NCBI GenBank assembly: GCA_002104945.1
Contig: MCFH01000005.1
Location: forward strand, 124,001-188,000
Direction of reading: 5' to 3'
Length of the DNA stretch: 64,000 nt
Source of the DNA: Piromyces finnis finn
Taxonomy: Eukaryota; Fungi; Neocallimastigomycota
The notes under the pieces were generated by a model. The model did not search any database. It worked only from the letters and a program-made list of their open reading frames with translations, and was not told the DNA's origin. Position 1 is the first letter of the stretch; each line of letters opens with the position of its first letter. This document shows, one piece after another, positions 47,782 through 61,394 of this stretch. Made by a program: the position numbers and the translations under genes.

Positions 47782-49475
47782 TTAACGAAAATGATTCTTT
47801 TTATTTTTAATTGTTTTATAAATAGCATTATTAGATGATTCTGAATTAAAAGCAGAACTAAATGATCTTTTTGATTGTTGATTAAATACAGACCAAAACT
47901 TTAAGGTTTCATCACTTGCTACTGTTGCTACTGTTTGACCATCAGGACTTAATGCTATTTTCATTAAATGAAAAATTAATATAATATTTAAATTTTTTAA
48001 AATATTAATTAATAAATATAATTTACCAGAATATAATATACGTGAATCATGACCTTTAATATTAGATATTCGATCCATTGTTGGAAATTTCCAAATATTA
48101 ATGTCATTAGTTGAATAACCATGTGTTGTTAACAATTCCGTATAATGATTTGACCATATAATCGAAGTAATTTGAGATTCCGTTTTAATATTTTTTAAAT
48201 TTGCTTGTGTAGTAATATTCCATAAACGCAATGTTTTATCTGATATACCACCGCCAGTTGCTAAAAGATTTAATTGCCATGGACACCATGCCATTGCCTA
48301 TCATATTAAATTATATTAATACTAATTATTTAATTATATTAAAACACTATATGTATAATCAATATTAATTTTTTTACTTTTACAGCAGCATTATGATCTG
48401 CTTTTTCCATATAAGGTTTTGAAGATTTAAGATCCCACAATTTTACTAAATTATCATTTCCTCCACTTGCTAAATATTCACCATCACTTCTCCATTTTAA
48501 ACCACATATATTTGAATTATGAGCTTGAAATATGCTTATAAATGAATTTTTAATACGAACATCATTATGGTGTATAAAACCATCATTATAAGCTGATGTC
48601 AATATATTTTTATTCCATGATAAACAACCTACACGCGGTTCAATATTATTTATATTTTTACTTTTTAAATTTTCTTCCTCTTCATTTTTTGATTTTATCT
48701 TATAATCAAGTTTAGAAGTATTGTCTTGCTTTCTTTTTATTGTTCTTAATTTCCTATTATTTACAGTATCCCATATTTGAGTTTCACCCTCTGATGTTCC
48801 TATTCCTAAATAACTTCCATCATTACTCCATTTTAATGAGCATATACTACCAATTTCTTTACTATTGCCAATTGTATTAATAGTTCCATAAGTTGCATCC
48901 CATATATAAATGATAGAATCTAATGATATTGCAATTTGATTATTCAAAGACCAATCAAAAAGTTCACTATAATAATCATCGCCTATTTTTGGTGCATCTA
49001 ACACACGTTCTGGTTTGTTTGGTATAAAACGATTTATTTTTTTTATACTAATTGACTTTGAATTTATCCAAGTTGAACGAAAAATATCCTTTTCGTTGGT
49101 TGGTGGTTGACAATTATATGTAATAATTCTACTGTTTTTATCTTTATCCTCATTAGAATATATTATCTTTTCGGATTGTGCATTTATTTTATCATTTTCA
49201 ATATTCTTTATAAATAGTTTAAATTTCAATTTATTTTAATATAATTAATAATAATTAATATTGGAAGGAAAATAAAAGCAAAAAAAAAAAAAAAAAATTG
49301 TAATATAAAAAATAAATAAATAATTCACCTTATTTACTTCCTTTTTTTCATTTATCTCCTTAACTTTTGTAATTTTATATTCATTGTCTTTAACAAAAAG
49401 GTCAGAGTCATGTTTTTTTATTTTTTGTTGGGGTATTTGATTATATAAAGTTAAAGGTTTTCTTTTATATTCCAT
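47782..49475 (-). CDS. CDC20: Cdc20/Fizzy-family WD40 APC/C co-activator, divergent
   Basis: [117 protein letters not shown]. The family is secure; the specific paralog (Cdc20 vs a meiotic Fzr/Ama1 type) is not. Confidence 0.85.
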
Positions 49476-52552: not shown

Positions 52553-54759
52553 CTAATATATTAATTTCTTTGGTTTTTCCCATGGGAATGAACTTCTACC
52601 GAAGTGACCATAACAAGCAGTTTTTTCATAAATAGGATTCATTAAATCTAGTTCTTTTACGATAATACCTGGTCTTAAATCGAAATTAGATTCTATAATA
52701 TTTAAAAGATCTGCTTCAGTTTTACCTTTCATGCAGGTTCCGTATGTGTCAATAAATATAGATAATGGCTCAGATATACCAATTGCATACGATAGCTGTA
52801 CTAGAGCTCGTTTACATAATCCTTCATTAACTAATGACTTAGCTATCCAACGAGCTGCATATGCACCAGAACGATCGACTTTTGACCAATCTTTACCTGA
52901 AAAGGCACCACCACCATGTGCACCCCAACCACCATAACTATATATAAAAATATTATTGTATATATTAATATCTTAAAAAAACAGTATTTTTTTTTTTTTT
53001 TTTTTTGTTTTAATAACATACGTGTCAACTATTATTTTTCTTCCAGTTAAACCGGCATCTCCTTGTGGACCACCAATAACAAATTTTCCGGATGGTTGTA
53101 AATGATAAATTGTTTCTTCATCTAAATATTTTTCTGGGATTACAGGCTAATTGTTATTTTTTTTTTTTTTTTTTTAATTAAGAAAAAAAAATTTTTTTAT
53201 GAATTAATATGCATTATTAATTATTATTTATAAATTATTGTTATCATTTATTAATATTCAATAAAAATTACTTTTATATATTTTTTTAAATAAGCTTATA
53301 CCTTTATAACATTTTCAAGTAATTGTTTTTTTATTTCATTTAACTTTATTGATTCAGAGTGTTGAGCTGAAATAACAACAGTATGAACACGTCTTGGAAT
53401 AGTGACACCGTCTTTAATTTTATATTCAATAGTTACCTTAAAAAGTTATTTAATAAATAATATTATTAATAATAAACATAATTTTTATCAAGTAAAAAAT
53501 TAAATATATTGTAAATATATATATATATAACATACTTGAGTTTTAGTGTCAGGTCTTAACCACGATAATTCACCATTTCTTCTTAATTTGCTCATTCTAT
53601 AATTTAATTTATGAGCTAAAAGTATTGATAATGGCATACACTCTTTGGTTTCATTTGTTGCATAACCAAACATAATACCCTGTAATAATTGAAAAATATA
53701 TTAATATTAATGATAATAAATGTTAATATTTTGTTAATTTATTTTTATATTACAAAAATGAAAATATAACATACCTGATCTCCTGCACCAATATTTTCAA
53801 TATTACCGCCATTTTGAACTAAACCTTGAGAGATATCTGAAGACTGTTGTTCAATAGCTACTAATACATTACATGTTTTATAATCAAATCCTATATTATA
53901 AAAAATAGTTTTATATAAATAATTTGTAATATAATAATTTAATAAATAATTAATTCTAACATACCTTTTGATGAATCATCATATCCAATTCTTTTAATAG
54001 TTCTACGAACAATTGATTGATAGTCAAGCTTTGCCTTTGATGAAATTTCTCCAAATACAAGAATCATTCCAGTTTTTGTTGCAGTTTCACATGCAACCTT
54101 TGAAAATGGATCTTGACTAAGACATTCATCAAGAATAGCATCTGAGATTTGATCTGCAATTTTATCTATGTAAATTATAAAATTCATTAATATATATTAT
54201 ATTTTTATTTCTAAAAATATTTTTGTATTATATCAACACTTTTAACTTTAAAAATTATTTTTATACTTTTATATACATCAATTAATAATATAATATCCCT
54301 AAATCTAAACATTTAAATTTATATTTTTTAATAATATAGAAATTACATTATACCTGGATGACCTTCTCCAACTGATTCTGAAGTAAATAATATAGAATCA
54401 GGATATTTACATTTTATAGGTTTTTTCTTATAACTACTATTACTGAAGTATCTTTTTGATAAATTTATTTTAGTATTTATAAATTTTGGTACTATTTGGG
54501 ATGGAGATACTGTTTTATAACTAAATAACTGTTTTTCAAATAAACAATTCGAATTTTTTATACGCTGTTCCCTTACTTTTTTGGAATTTAGGAATAATAA
54601 GCTACTAGAAGTAGTATAACTTCTTTCTTCATTATGTGATATATTATTATTTCTAAAAGAATTAATTTTTGTTAAGGAAATAGGAGAAATAACATTTGAT
54701 AATAAATTACTAGTATAATTTGTGCCTTTACTTAAAAAGGTTTGAATATATAATGACAT
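52553..54759 (-). CDS. MAT: S-adenosylmethionine synthetase (methionine adenosyltransferase) with a ~115-aa N-terminal extension
   Basis: [25 protein letters not shown]...[20 protein letters not shown]; [16 protein letters not shown]; LRPD.KTQVT; [13 protein letters not shown]; [35 protein letters not shown]; FDLRPG; YGHFGR...FPWE. Stop at 52553. Confidence 0.97.
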
Positions 54760-56322
54760 ATTAAGATTCTATTTTTTTTTTTTTTTTCTTTGAAAATAAA
54801 AGTATTAATAATAATATTTATGTAATATTTATAACAATTATATTTCAAAGTAATTAATAAAATTTAAATTTAATCAAATATAATTTTAGATTAATTTCTT
54901 AATTAACAATATTATTTTCATAAATTAAAAATTGTTAGTAATAATATGTTGTGTATTTTTTCTTCAATGATTATTTAAATTTAAATCCAATGTATTGAAT
55001 TATTTCATATTATAGTAGAATTTTTATATATTTAACAGTCAAAATGTTTTTAATTTTATATTATATATAATAATAATAATAATAATAATAAAAATATATA
55101 TATTAATTTTAGAGATGATAGGTAAAATTAAATAAATACGATTTAAAAATCAAATATTTCTCTTAAATGTAGAATACCGAGGCCATTACGTAATATTAGA
55201 TTAATATAAATAATTGTAATATAAACTTTAATATATATAAATAAATAAATTTTTCTTTTTAAAAAAAAATCATTTTAAAAAGAGAAATTATATATAAACA
55301 TTTATTTTATTTTAAATATTCAATTATTAATGTTTTTTATTTGCTAATATTTACTATAATTGATGTTTATTTTTTTGAAATTGTTCATTAATTATAATAT
55401 ATTAATTTATATCATAAATTCATTAATTAGTAATATTATTTATTAAAAAGAAATATTAATTGGTATAATGGTATTACTATTAAGACGATATTTATGTTTA
55501 ATATATTTATTTTTTAATATAATATTATCTAAAAATTAATATTTTATATTACATATTATGAACAAAAAAAAATACATTACACAAATTTGTAAAAGTGTAT
55601 ACATCATTAAGAATTTGTATTATCTAAATTAAAAATGATCAATACTACATTTAATAAAAAATTAATTATAATTGTTAAAGCTTTACATTTTCTTTTTAAA
55701 CAAATATAAAATTTTAATTTAAAAGTTTAAATATACATTTTTGTAGTTAATAAATCATTTTATCATATATTAATTTTTATTATCTTCACATTAATTAATT
55801 TTATTTATTTTCAATAATATTAAATAAATAATAAATATTTGAGCTTTTCAATTTTAAAAATTTATAAAAATTTAAATTTTTATTTCCTTTAAAAATTAGC
55901 ATCAATATAAAAAAGAATAAGATTGTAAAAAAGAGTATATAATTTATTACGATCAATTCTAAAAGAAAGAAAAAATAATAATATTCATAATAAATTTATA
56001 TTATATTTTATTATATTATACAAGTACTATTATTATATAAAGTTTTCTATTATTTTGGTGTAAATTTTATATAAAAGAATACATCAATTAGTTTTAAAAA
56101 AACTAATTAAATAAATTTTAATCTTTTTTTTTTCTAAGAATTAATTTGTTATACACTATTTAAATAATATATATATAAGAATAAAAATCAAAAAAAAAAA
56201 AAAAAAATATTTACAAAATTTGTATGAGAAAAAATATTCAGTGGTGACATTAATAATCAGAATAATTGATCAAAAAATAAAAAAAAATAAAAAAAAAAAA
56301 AGCCACAAGATTATTTAACTAT

Positions 56323-57056: not shown

Positions 57057-60000
57057 ATGTATTACAACAATTCGGCAGGTGCTAATATTAGCAATGCCAA
57101 TTCAAATGGAGGTAGTGCAAGTTCTAATAACTCTAATAACAATACTAATAATGGACATGGTTTGATAAATAATAAAAGTTCTTATTTAAGAAACCAATCG
57201 TCAATCTCTAATATAAATAATTCACAAAATTCCAATTATATAAACTCACATAGTTCTTCAAATCCAGCTATGAGAAATAACTCAAATAATAATTTAAATA
57301 TGTACCAAAGTTTAGGTGGAATGACTGGAATGTTAAATAATGTGAATATGAACATGAACATGAACATGAACCATGGCATTCCAATGAATATTGGAATGTT
57401 AGGCCATGGAAATAATAATAGTGGAAATTCTAACAACAACAACAACAATAATAATAATAATGAAAGTAATGGCGGCAGTAATACTGGTAATGGTATAAAT
57501 CCTTTGGGAATTAATTCAATGAATATGATGAATTCGATGAATTCTATGATGATGAACATGATAAATAATAATCAGAACATAAACAATATAAATGGTATGA
57601 TGCCAATGAATGGAATGTCAATGAATAATATAAATATGAACATACCAAATATGAAAATGAATATGATGCCTAATATGCAAAATATGAATGTAAATTCAAT
57701 GATGGGTATTAAAAACAAAGTATTTTATAATTCTAATTCATCTGTAATTAATGGTCTTCCAAGAGATTCACGTTTATTTATTGGTAATCTTGCTAGTGAG
57801 AAAACAACAAAAGCTGGTTTAGCACAGATTTTCAGCCGTTATGGTAATATTTATGAAATTGTTATTAAAAATAGTTATGGTTTTATCCAGTTTGATAATC
57901 GTGATAGTTGTCAAAAAGCTATTAACAATGAAAACAGAAGAAATATTGGTGGTTTACCAATTGGTAATTTTATGTTTCTAGTTTTTAATATGAATTATAT
58001 TATTATAAAAACACTATATAAAATTATATGTTTTCTAATTATATAAAAATAAAATATTATATATTATATAATATTTATATAAATATTCATTAAATAATAA
58101 AGATTTAAAAGTTTCAAAAAGTCGTCAAAATAATCAAAGAAATAATAGAAATAATGAAAGAGATAGAAATAGAATGAGAGACAGAAGTCGTAGTAGAAGT
58201 CGTGATCGTGATAGAGAAAGAAGTAGAAGAAGCAGAAGCAGAAGTAGAAGTAGAAGTAGAATAAGAGACCGTGACAGAAACAGAGATAGAAATAGAGATA
58301 GAAGCAGAAGCAGAAGCAGAAGCAGAGAAAGAGAAAGAGATAAAAATAGAGAAAGAAGAAGAGATCGTAGCCGTAGTAGAAATAGAGATAGAAATAAAAG
58401 TCGTAGTAGGGATAGAGATAGAAGCACTAAAAATAAAGATAAAGGAAAGGATAGATTGTCATTAAAAGAAAAGGAAACAAAAAATGATGAAAGCAAAAAA
58501 ATAGAAAAAAATGCTAAAAATAGCAATAAGAGTGAAACACGAGATGAAGAAGAAAGTAAAGATGAAGTTAAAAAAGAAAATGATGATGAATATAAAACAA
58601 AAGAAGATATTAACGAGAAGGAAAAGGAACAATCGAGTAATCAAATGGAAATTGACAAAGAAATAAATAAAAATGATGAAGCTAAAAATGATGAAATTAA
58701 AAATGATGATAAAGAAAATGATGAAAATAAAAATGATGAAATTAAAAATGATGAAATTAAAAATGATGAAATTAAAAATGATGAAATTAAAAACGATGAA
58801 ATTAAAAATGATGAGATTAAAAATGATGATATAAAAAATAAGGAAAATAAAAAGAAAGATAAAAAAAATGATGGAGCTGAAATAACATCATTTAATAATA
58901 AAGAAAAAGATATTATCAATTCAAAAAAAGAGGATAATAGAGAAATTGAAAGTGATAGGGAAGATATTGATATTAAGAATGATGATAATGAAAATGATAA
59001 TAAAAGAGATAATAATGAAAATAAAAAAGATGATAGTGAAATTGAAATTAAAAACATTAAAAAAGACGATGATGAATGTAAGAAAAATAATGAAATTGAT
59101 AATAAGAAGGATAATAATGTAAAGGAAGAAACATCAATATCTAAAGACAAATCCAAAAATGAAAATTCAAAAGAATCTCTTGATTCTAAAAAAGATAAAG
59201 ACAAAAAAGAAAAAAGCAATAGAAATGATCGCGATCATAAAAATGATAAAAACAAATCTAATAGCAAGAAATCATCAAAAAGAGAAAAAAATAAAAGTAA
59301 TAATAGTAATAACAAAAAAAGTAAAACTGATAATGATAATTCAGAAGAGAGTGGTTCTACTGAATCAAATTCAGATAATCGCGATTCAAGTAGACATGAT
59401 AAAAATTCAAGATCCAGCAGAGATCATCATCGCCATGATCATGATTATCATCCATATAGTAGAGACCATCATCGTCGTAACAGATCATCAAGTAGAAATA
59501 GAAAAGATGAACGTCAAAGAAGATCGCGTTCAAGAAGTAATTCCAGAAGAAGTAGTAGCATCAATAGAAATAGAGAAGATAGATATCAAAGAAATAGAAG
59601 AAATAATAATAATAATAAAAGAGTTCATGTTGAAAAGCATTCAAATACCGACTTTACACCTCCAAAAAGAAATGGGCCAATTCCAATTTGTCAAATGGTA
59701 GTCATTGGTGATGTTGAAAAGTAAGGAATTTAAAATAATATTTATATTATATTTTTATTACATTAAGGTTTTAATTTAATAAAAATGATTATAACTTAAA
59801 ATACTTTCTAATATAATTAATAAGGGATATTATTAATGAAATTGAAAATGGAGCAAAAAAAGGTAATATTAGAATGGAAACATTATACATCAGTCCAAAG
59901 TATTCTATCCCAGTTGTTATTGAGCAATTTAAACTTGAAGGTGTTAAAGCTGTTATTGTAATTGAACGTGAAACAAAAACAATTATATTACGTATATTTG

Positions 60001-61394
60001 ATAGTAATGGCAACGAAAATGGTAAAAATACTATATAAAACTTATTAAAATAAATATTTTGAATAACTTTATACTTTTAATATATTTATTATCATTTATG
60101 TATTAATTTTTTTGTTGCTATTTTTATTTTAATTATTACATATCATAATTTTTGTTTATATATAGAATATAATAATATTAATCCAATAGAATGTGTAAGA
60201 ATATTAAATGAAAGTCCCGTTATTAAGAGCGCTATTCACGGCTTTATATATCCAAATAATTATAATAGTATGAATAATATGGGGATTAATTCAATGAATT
60301 ACATGAATAATATTTATGGAATGATGAATAATATTAATAATATGAATAATATGAATAATATGAATAATATAAATAATATAAATAATATAAATAATATGAA
60401 TAACATGAATAACATGAATATAATGAATATGACACATAATATGAATAATAATAATATGAATAAGAATATGATGAATATGAATAGTAATAATAATAGTAAT
60501 AATAATAACAATAATAATAATTTTTCCATGATGTCTTCCTTCCAACAAAATTCTAATATATCAAATAACATGAATCAAAATATGATGATGAATAATATGA
60601 CACACTTATCAAATATGAATTTTTCTAATAACGGTGTTCCAATGACCTCCTCTCCTTCCTCAAATAATACTTCTAATAATAGTAACAATAGTAACAACAA
60701 CAATGGAAATAGTAATATCAATAATAATAGAAATGTAATGTATAATCCCTACCGTCCTACTGGTAATATTAATCTACCATCTTCTAATTCTTCATCGTCG
60801 ACCATTCCTACTTCTTCTAACCCAAGTTACAATACTCTAACCAATATTCTTTCCACTTTTAATGATAATAACTCTACTAAATCCTCTCTTCTTCCAAATT
60901 TAAATAATAACTCCTCCTTTAATAACTCTTCATCTAATAATAGCTATTCTAATAAGAATAATAATTATAATATGCAAAATAATTTAAATAAGAATAAGTC
61001 CATAATGAATCAAAAGTCACCTATAAGAAATTCAGTAAATAATAGCAATGGTAATAATCATTCTAATTCTAATTCACTTTCTGATATATTACAAAAATTA
61101 AAGTCTATTCCTCAAAATAATCTCAATTCCAATGGTGTTATAAATTCTTTACCATCCTTGGGTACTCCAATGAATAATTCTATTCATCATAATTCTACTA
61201 ATAACAACAATAACAACAGTTCTTCAAGTAAGACTAATAGCATGAGCCATCTAAATTCAATTAATTCTAATTATGAGAGCATGCCCAATTCAATAAATTA
61301 TCATGACTCTACTTATCATAACTCAAAACCTGGCAATAATAATAAGAACATGAATTCAAATATGTATGGACAAAATAATTATATGTCTTATTAA
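57057..61394 (+). CDS. Nab3/NCOA5-like RRM RNA-binding protein with RS/RD-rich, charged and Asn/Met-rich low-complexity regions; 4 exons, ~1,300 aa
   Basis: RRM DSRLFIGNLASEK...IFSRYGNIYEIVIKNSYGFIQFDN resembles the Nab3 RRM (SRLFIGNL...KNAFGFIQFDN). After the RS/RD region comes PICQMVVIGD...EGVKAVIVI, resembling the anticodon-binding-like domain of NCOA5-type proteins. Exon frames join correctly (57963/58103; 59720/59828). Confidence 0.8.
58729..58833 (+). repeat. Coding 15-bp minisatellite (AAAAATGATGAAATT) x7 encoding KNDEI repeats
   Basis: Visible in the DNA and in the translation KNDEIKNDEIKNDEI... Confidence 0.9.

Follow-up and report, generated by a model that had tools for sequence, protein, structure and literature searches.

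Why does a SAM synthetase (methionine adenosyltransferase, MAT; EC 2.5.1.6) of the gut fungus Piromyces finnis reach its catalytic core only after more than a hundred extra N-terminal residues, and where in the cell would such an enzyme act? The gene lies in a stretch of 64 kb that we analyzed as a whole (hereafter, the window) and that has a GC content of 18.6%, and no further MAT copy was found within these 64 kb. An earlier note on this DNA had suggested that the extension directs the enzyme to the hydrogenosome, the only mitochondrion-type organelle of gut fungi. Our splice model is a seven-exon gene on the minus strand that encodes a protein of 503 aa, with GT-AG borders at six of six introns, and its spliced translation matches ORX57713.1 (P0135; "methionine adenosyltransferase [Piromyces finnis]") residue for residue; both the long gene model and the protein sequence are already public. 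The elements of the gene are as follows:

52553..54759, minus strand: coding region of the long-form MAT, stop included (splice model, spliced contigs and identity to ORX57713.1)
54759-54354, minus strand: MAT exon 1 (splice model)
54165-53965, minus strand: MAT exon 2 (splice model)
53890-53775, minus strand: MAT exon 3 (splice model)
53679-53536, minus strand: MAT exon 4 (splice model)
53436-53302, minus strand: MAT exon 5 (splice model)
53146-53022, minus strand: MAT exon 6 (splice model)
52937-52553, minus strand: MAT exon 7, to the stop (splice model)
54391..54759, minus strand: N-terminal extension, codons 1-123, MSLYIQ...KYPDSI (open frame, orthologue alignment, AlphaFold and dN/dS)

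Exon 1 sits within an open reading frame of 138 aa (54343-54759, minus strand) that opens with the ATG at 54759, three codons downstream of an in-frame stop; the exon ends at 54354 and the GT donor occupies 54353-54352 on the minus strand. Elsewhere in the window, two adjoining open frames at 47782-49229 on the minus strand look WD-repeat-like by eye and are probably exons of a single gene. On the plus strand, positions 57057-61394 hold several long open frames full of Asn, Met and Ser runs and Arg-Ser or Asp-Lys repeats, apparently coding for one or more proteins of RNA-binding type, and they illustrate how common low-complexity coding sequence is in the P. finnis genome.

Spliced transcript contigs from four public runs in three studies lack all six introns and match the model with no mismatches. 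Exon 1 is continuous in the four contigs, from 54354 to 54698, 54743, 54759 and 55005, respectively, and a splice joint inside the extension was seen in none of the four runs. The extension is therefore kept unspliced in these mRNAs, and the worry raised with the original proposal, that splicing might remove it, is not borne out. The longest contig also covers the region upstream of the start codon:

54760..55005, minus strand: 5' UTR of 246 nt in the longest contig (contig unbroken from 54354 to 55005)
54772-54787, minus strand: run of 16 A residues just before the start codon (inside the 5' UTR of the longest contig)
54886-54921, minus strand: upstream ORF of 11 codons, MKIILLIKKLI, with its ATG at 54921 (inside the 5' UTR)

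Three of the four contigs end at or short of the A16 run. Intronless full-length transcript contigs with the same architecture are available from five further taxa or paralogs (L003, L005, L006, L008 and L010), and transcript contigs from five taxa or paralogs besides P. finnis carry 190-290 nt of 5' UTR above the corresponding ATG. On L008 and L009 (JGI 3300010980 and 3300010976), an intronless 497-aa long MAT lies 357 nt downstream of another ORF on the same strand, which runs off the end of the locus; read-through or a chimeric contig is possible there.

These transcripts bear on the suspicion that the extension is an artefact of annotation or assembly, with the true start lying elsewhere or a minor transcript skipping the extension to give a product of normal length. 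Rare isoforms are lost from transcript contigs, which also do not reveal where a transcript begins, and the GenBank model of one Neocallimastix paralog (ORY28658.1, 419 aa) does begin at an internal Met, both of which would suit an artefact. Yet the absence of any exon-1 joint in the four runs and the 5' UTRs above the orthologous start codons speak against it, and so does the reading frame itself. The sole Met of the extension is residue 1, which lies 123 residues before the LFTSESV start of the catalytic region, and the next is residue 169, within the core, which agrees with the earlier observation that the only Met stands ~120 codons ahead of the catalytic motif. Because internal Met codons are absent, a minor shorter transcript would not be able to give a normal MAT. 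When the bases of the extension were shuffled 100,000 times, a frame this long without a stop came up once, so that chance openness has a probability of ~1e-5 for the P. finnis sequence, and the ~120 codons are open in 8 sequences from genomes of ~20% GC or less. The GC content of the extension (21.7%) compares with 8-11% in introns and upstream DNA and 27-35% in the core exons, and dN/dS in the leader is below 1. We regard an artefact as largely refuted and very improbable. As for the Neocallimastix model that starts at an internal Met (P0006), a genomic contig and a 506-aa JGI protein carry the full leader upstream of it (P0128, P0002, L002), and that model is probably truncated.

The extension is shared among gut fungi. 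A word search with exon 1 returned two orthologous exon-1 ORFs from genomic contigs (P0001 and P0002, at 45% and 38% identity) in which the intron position is the same, and a metagenome scan with the leader alignment added a single locus (L003), an intronless Neocallimastix transcript that encodes a 501-aa MAT of the same architecture. With the L003 contig as a full-length query for the long-form homology search, long forms of 497-506 aa were found in P. finnis, as two paralogs in Neocallimastix californiae/lanati (ORY73036.1, 501 aa; and ORY28658.1, the 419-aa model of which 506-aa versions exist), in an Anaeromyces-like taxon (P0138, 501 aa) and in three further taxa. In Anaeromyces robustus, ORX72588.1 is a partial long-form model that lacks exon 1. 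The leader is present in all 8 long forms, where it measures 117-126 residues, and is absent in more than 110 other fungal MATs. Loss of the extension in close relatives, which would have spoken against the original proposal, was thus not seen in any sampled relative. Among the best 120 matches, the fungal MATs from outside the gut fungi are all 381-399 aa long and begin near the catalytic motif, as the earlier note had supposed, with the exception of a 641-aa Chytriomyces protein that carries extra Pfam domains of leucine-rich-repeat type.

Downstream of the leader, the long form belongs to the MAT family. PF02773 matches in exon 7 (E=2.4e-52), and precomputed annotation places the N-terminal, central and C-terminal MAT domains (PF00438, PF02772 and PF02773) in the long-form proteins that the homology search retrieved, including P0007, the representative of the cluster at at least 90% identity that contains the P. 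finnis protein. Catalytic and substrate-binding motif residues are invariant among the 25 long, short and outgroup MATs that we aligned (alignment A3), and dN/dS in the long-form core is 0.05-0.07. Because the core is strongly constrained and every family-invariant residue is kept, the long-form enzyme is probably active. Six replacements are fixed in the long clade at sites whose conservation outside it is 90% or more (C139A, A149E, P220S, A223S, D250N and A400G).

Gut fungi also possess MATs of normal length, and these came to light by following P0140, which begins MVETFLFTSESV. P. finnis has canonical 383-aa MATs (ORX39517.1 and ORX56703.1), as do Neocallimastix (ORY54798.1 and ORY36615.1) and Pecoramyces ruminantium among the short forms, and a partial short MAT is recorded for A. 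robustus (ORX80667.1). The short P. finnis protein begins canonically (MAETFLFTSESV), and the long form has ~118 residues more before the core; the two P. finnis cores are 74% identical. The earlier note had called for a search for such a short paralog, which is thus present, and had also argued from the missing internal Met that the locus could give no normal-length cytosolic form. The missing Met stands, but the argument built on it is moot, given the separate genes for 383-aa MATs. The record behind P0140 is itself a mosaic (L004, JGI 3300018087; 1158 nt, exactly one ORF of 385 aa): the opening ~120 codons correspond to the short Anaeromyces MAT (ORX80667.1, 99%), and over the last ~260 codons a comparison with L005 shows 88-97% DNA identity to the long Anaeromyces-like form, which points to an assembly chimera or to gene conversion between long and short paralogs.

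In a maximum-likelihood tree built on the cores, with the leader removed, the long forms group together with strong support (100/100), their stem measuring 0.35 changes per site, and the short gut-fungal forms make up a separate clade (100/100) nested among chytrids. A tree that unites the long and short gut-fungal forms was not rejected (AU p = 0.255), and a duplication within the gut-fungal lineage is for that reason compatible with the data. On these sequences the long and short forms look like an isozyme pair of the kind typical of cytosol/organelle splits, and the existence of separate canonical 383-aa MATs makes an organelle-specific isoform more plausible.

What, then, is the leader? 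Its composition is dominated by Ser (22), Lys (15), Asn (14), Leu (11) and Ile (11), with 5 Arg and 5 acidic residues, giving a net charge of +15; the description of the frame in the earlier note as rich in Ser, Asn and Lys and poor in acidic residues was accurate. Across the 8 long-form leaders the net charge is +10 to +16 in every case, the first 40 residues hold 0-1 acidic and 2-6 basic residues, and the first acidic residue comes at position 30-61. AlphaFold, run with a 25-sequence alignment, gives pLDDT of ~25 for residues 1-113, in coil with no secondary structure, and the leader is predicted to be unstructured. A Pfam scan of the leader matched no family, HMMER with exon 1 against 1.84 billion cluster representatives returned nothing but P0001, P0002 and a single protein of low complexity, and an ESM Atlas search with residues 1-122 gave no usable feature match and structural matches with TM of at most 0.42. 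With no homolog found elsewhere in these searches, the leader belongs, as far as sequence comparison reaches, to gut fungi alone and is neither a known nor a borrowed domain.

Signals for other compartments were sought as well. The hydrophobic core of a signal peptide is absent from the leader (mean hydrophobicity does not exceed 0.53 in any 11-residue window, and each stretch is interrupted by polar residues), a PTS2 pattern ([RK][LVIQ]xx[LVIHQ][LSGAK]x[HQ][LAF]) near the N-terminus occurs in none of the 8 long-form leaders, and the C-terminus of the long P. finnis MAT (...KKLIY) is not PTS1-like.

Aligning the P. finnis leader with its 7 orthologs (alignment A4) divides it into conserved ends and a variable, indel-rich middle:

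54685..54759, minus strand: semi-conserved first 25 residues (MSL..QTFLS....LLSNV.S), acid-free, with M1 and N22 invariant (alignment A4)
54613..54624, minus strand: first R-3-like motif, R46-S-Y-T49; [RK]-x-Y-[STV] in orthologs, with Y48 invariant (alignment A4)
54442..54456, minus strand: K102-R103-Y-F-S106, conserved as [KR]-R-[YH]-[FY]-S, candidate site for the matrix processing peptidase (MPP) (alignment A4)
54391..54441, minus strand: conserved basic block N107-I123 (N.S.KK..[IV]KCK[YF]PDS[IV]) (alignment A4)

Within the first 25 residues a hydrophobic-polar pattern, [ILV][LF][SP]N[ATV][LVI], is conserved. The R-Y-F-S motif that the earlier note had pointed out at the end of the leader is present, and in the form R-x-[FY]-S it proved to be the best-conserved leader element: all 8 long forms have R103 and S106, and in each ortholog the motif precedes LFTSESV by 17-18 residues, just where the variable leader gives way to the conserved block. 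In the R-3 pattern, MPP cuts two residues after Arg, and Icp55-type trimming then takes off the aromatic residue. Judged by its residues, [KR]-R-[YH]-[FY]-S fits a candidate cleavage site of MPP, either of R-2 type or of R-3 type with Icp55-type trimming. An R-10/Oct1 octapeptide site was considered and rejected, since it fits P. finnis alone and is not conserved in alignment A4. The basic block that follows, with K112, K116, C117, K118, P120, D121 and S122 invariant, is not found in canonical MATs.

Other explanations of the leader were weighed. The lysine-rich block might send the isozyme to the nucleus, or to nucleus and cytosol, and so provide SAM for the methylation of chromatin or RNA; the string KR...KKKPIK does resemble classical nuclear localisation signals, and part of mammalian MAT2A resides in the nucleus. 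Conservation does not extend to the lysine run, however: two orthologs read MKHAIKCK there, and only K112, K116 and K118 are invariant. Moreover, a nuclear signal would need neither ~100 further N-terminal residues nor an invariant start. We consider a nuclear role unlikely.

A more serious alternative is that the long form is a cytosolic isozyme whose disordered, lineage-specific leader is regulatory, scaffolding or stabilising (for example, through partner binding by the basic block) and carries no import signal. The leader evolves faster than the core (dN/dS 0.35-0.79, thus up to ~0.8), and a region that is predicted to be fully disordered, weakly constrained and longer than normal presequences would be at home in such an enzyme; low-complexity regions rich in Asn, Ser and Lys are plentiful in the neighbouring genes; and the strong conservation of the 17-18 residues before the core is what one would expect of a working part of the mature protein. 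The conserved length of the leader, like the basic block, could reflect another function than import. A cytosolic role would leave unexplained the conserved MSL start, the acid-free first 40 residues, the two R-x-Y/F-S motifs, the variability of the middle and the strictly N-terminal position of the region in every case, and on this evidence we hold it to be a real but rather improbable alternative.

Import into the hydrogenosome is in our judgement the best reading of the long-form leader, and we place it midway between doubt and acceptance. It draws together the existence of a dedicated paralog beside a canonical one; the burst of change on the paralog stem, followed by strong constraint; a leader that is strictly N-terminal, basic, poor in acidic residues, disordered and fast-evolving, with a conserved start; and a processing-type motif that is conserved where the variable part meets the conserved part. 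Several properties count against import. The leader comprises ~105-123 residues, compared with ~15-70 in a typical presequence; a cut at the distal motif would shorten the orthologs by ~100-108 residues, and a presequence of typical length would result only from the proximal motif (~48). Arginines are few (5 Arg versus 15 Lys), and the helical hydrophobic moment is modest, with peaks of 0.46-0.52 in 11-residue windows at 100 degrees, the AlphaFold coil being uninformative for induced helices. The Asn/Ser/Lys-rich composition is by itself weak evidence, because disordered stretches of that kind are common in the proteins of this AT-rich genome.

Two enzymes of the hydrogenosome depend on radical-SAM partners: [FeFe]-hydrogenase on its maturases HydE and HydG, and pyruvate formate-lyase (PFL) on its activase; HydE, HydG and PFL activase split SAM into 5'-deoxyadenosine and methionine. 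Against this background we infer a route of import, a cleavage site and a metabolic role for the long MAT. The leader would act as a mitochondrial-type presequence that takes the long isozyme into the hydrogenosome matrix, and the canonical 383-aa MAT would serve the cytosol. The matrix processing peptidase would cut at [KR]-R-[YH]|[FY]|S, and possibly at the upstream [RK]-x-Y-[ST] as well, leaving a mature enzyme that keeps the conserved basic N-terminus of 17-18 residues. Inside the organelle, the long MAT would convert methionine to SAM with ATP produced on the spot and pass the SAM to HydE and HydG, and to PFL activase if that enzyme is organellar; the methionine that they release could return to SAM, and a small closed Met/SAM cycle may result. 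The full proposal, which we put forward tentatively and with a little less than even confidence, is that the hydrogenosomes of gut fungi make their own SAM through a dedicated imported MAT paralog, older than or as old as the radiation of the sampled genera, in a self-contained Met/SAM cycle fed by organellar ATP and by methionine from radical-SAM enzymes (HydE, HydG and possibly PFL activase).

Our literature search found no paper that places a MAT in a hydrogenosome or in any related organelle, no description of the long-form MAT clade in gut fungi and no paper on gut-fungal SAM carriers. The text of a proteomics paper on hydrogenosomes of C. churrovis (PMC13556243), which names the hydrogenosome-enriched and whole-cell data sets PXD073882 / MSV000100685, does not mention MAT, and an entry for MAT is absent from the supplements of the N. 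lanati metabolic model. The one paper on mitochondrion-related organelles that mentions SAM synthetase puts the enzyme in the cytosolic methionine cycle.

Comparison with known systems sets the proposal in relief. With the canonical cytosolic SAM synthetases of fungi, represented by yeast Sam1/Sam2 and by ORX39517.1 in P. finnis, the long form shares the three-domain family (PF00438, PF02772 and PF02773) and all invariant residues, and it differs from them in its ~118 extra N-terminal residues, in its separate, long-stemmed clade and in its six clade-specific replacements. Presequences of R-2 and R-3 type that are cleaved by MPP likewise are N-terminal, positive, Ser/Thr-rich, disordered and fast-evolving, with an acid-poor start and an R-x-[FY]-S end, whereas the leader is 3-5 times longer than these, rich in Lys and Asn instead of Arg and Ala, and apparently only weakly amphipathic; the hydrogenosomal malic enzyme of gut fungi has a cleaved presequence of ~27 residues. 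Yeast Sam5/Pet8, human SLC25A26 and plant SAMT1 answer the same need for SAM within an organelle that houses SAM-dependent enzymes, but these carriers import cytosolic SAM, whereas the long form would synthesize it on site. Carriers are generally held to be the only source of SAM for mitochondria and plastids. Mammalian MAT-alpha1 has been reported in liver mitochondria, where it is the cytosolic gene product itself and has no cleavable N-terminal leader; it resembles the present proposal in placing a MAT in a mitochondrion-type organelle, and differs in that gut fungi have a dedicated paralog with a leader.

If the proposal is true, gut-fungal hydrogenosomes would become the first known organelles of mitochondrial descent to produce SAM with a presequence-bearing isozyme instead of importing it. 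A resident MAT would change the metabolic map of the organelle and would explain how SAM is supplied to the radical-SAM enzymes of hydrogenase maturation and perhaps of glycyl-radical activation, and it would offer a clear case in which, once its gene had been duplicated, an enzyme moved to another compartment as the lineage adapted to anaerobic life. The pair of long and short isozymes is a simple test system for localisation. Should the leader be no import signal, the conserved long-form clade would still show that a central housekeeping enzyme has become specialised, for reasons yet unexplained, throughout an entire fungal phylum.
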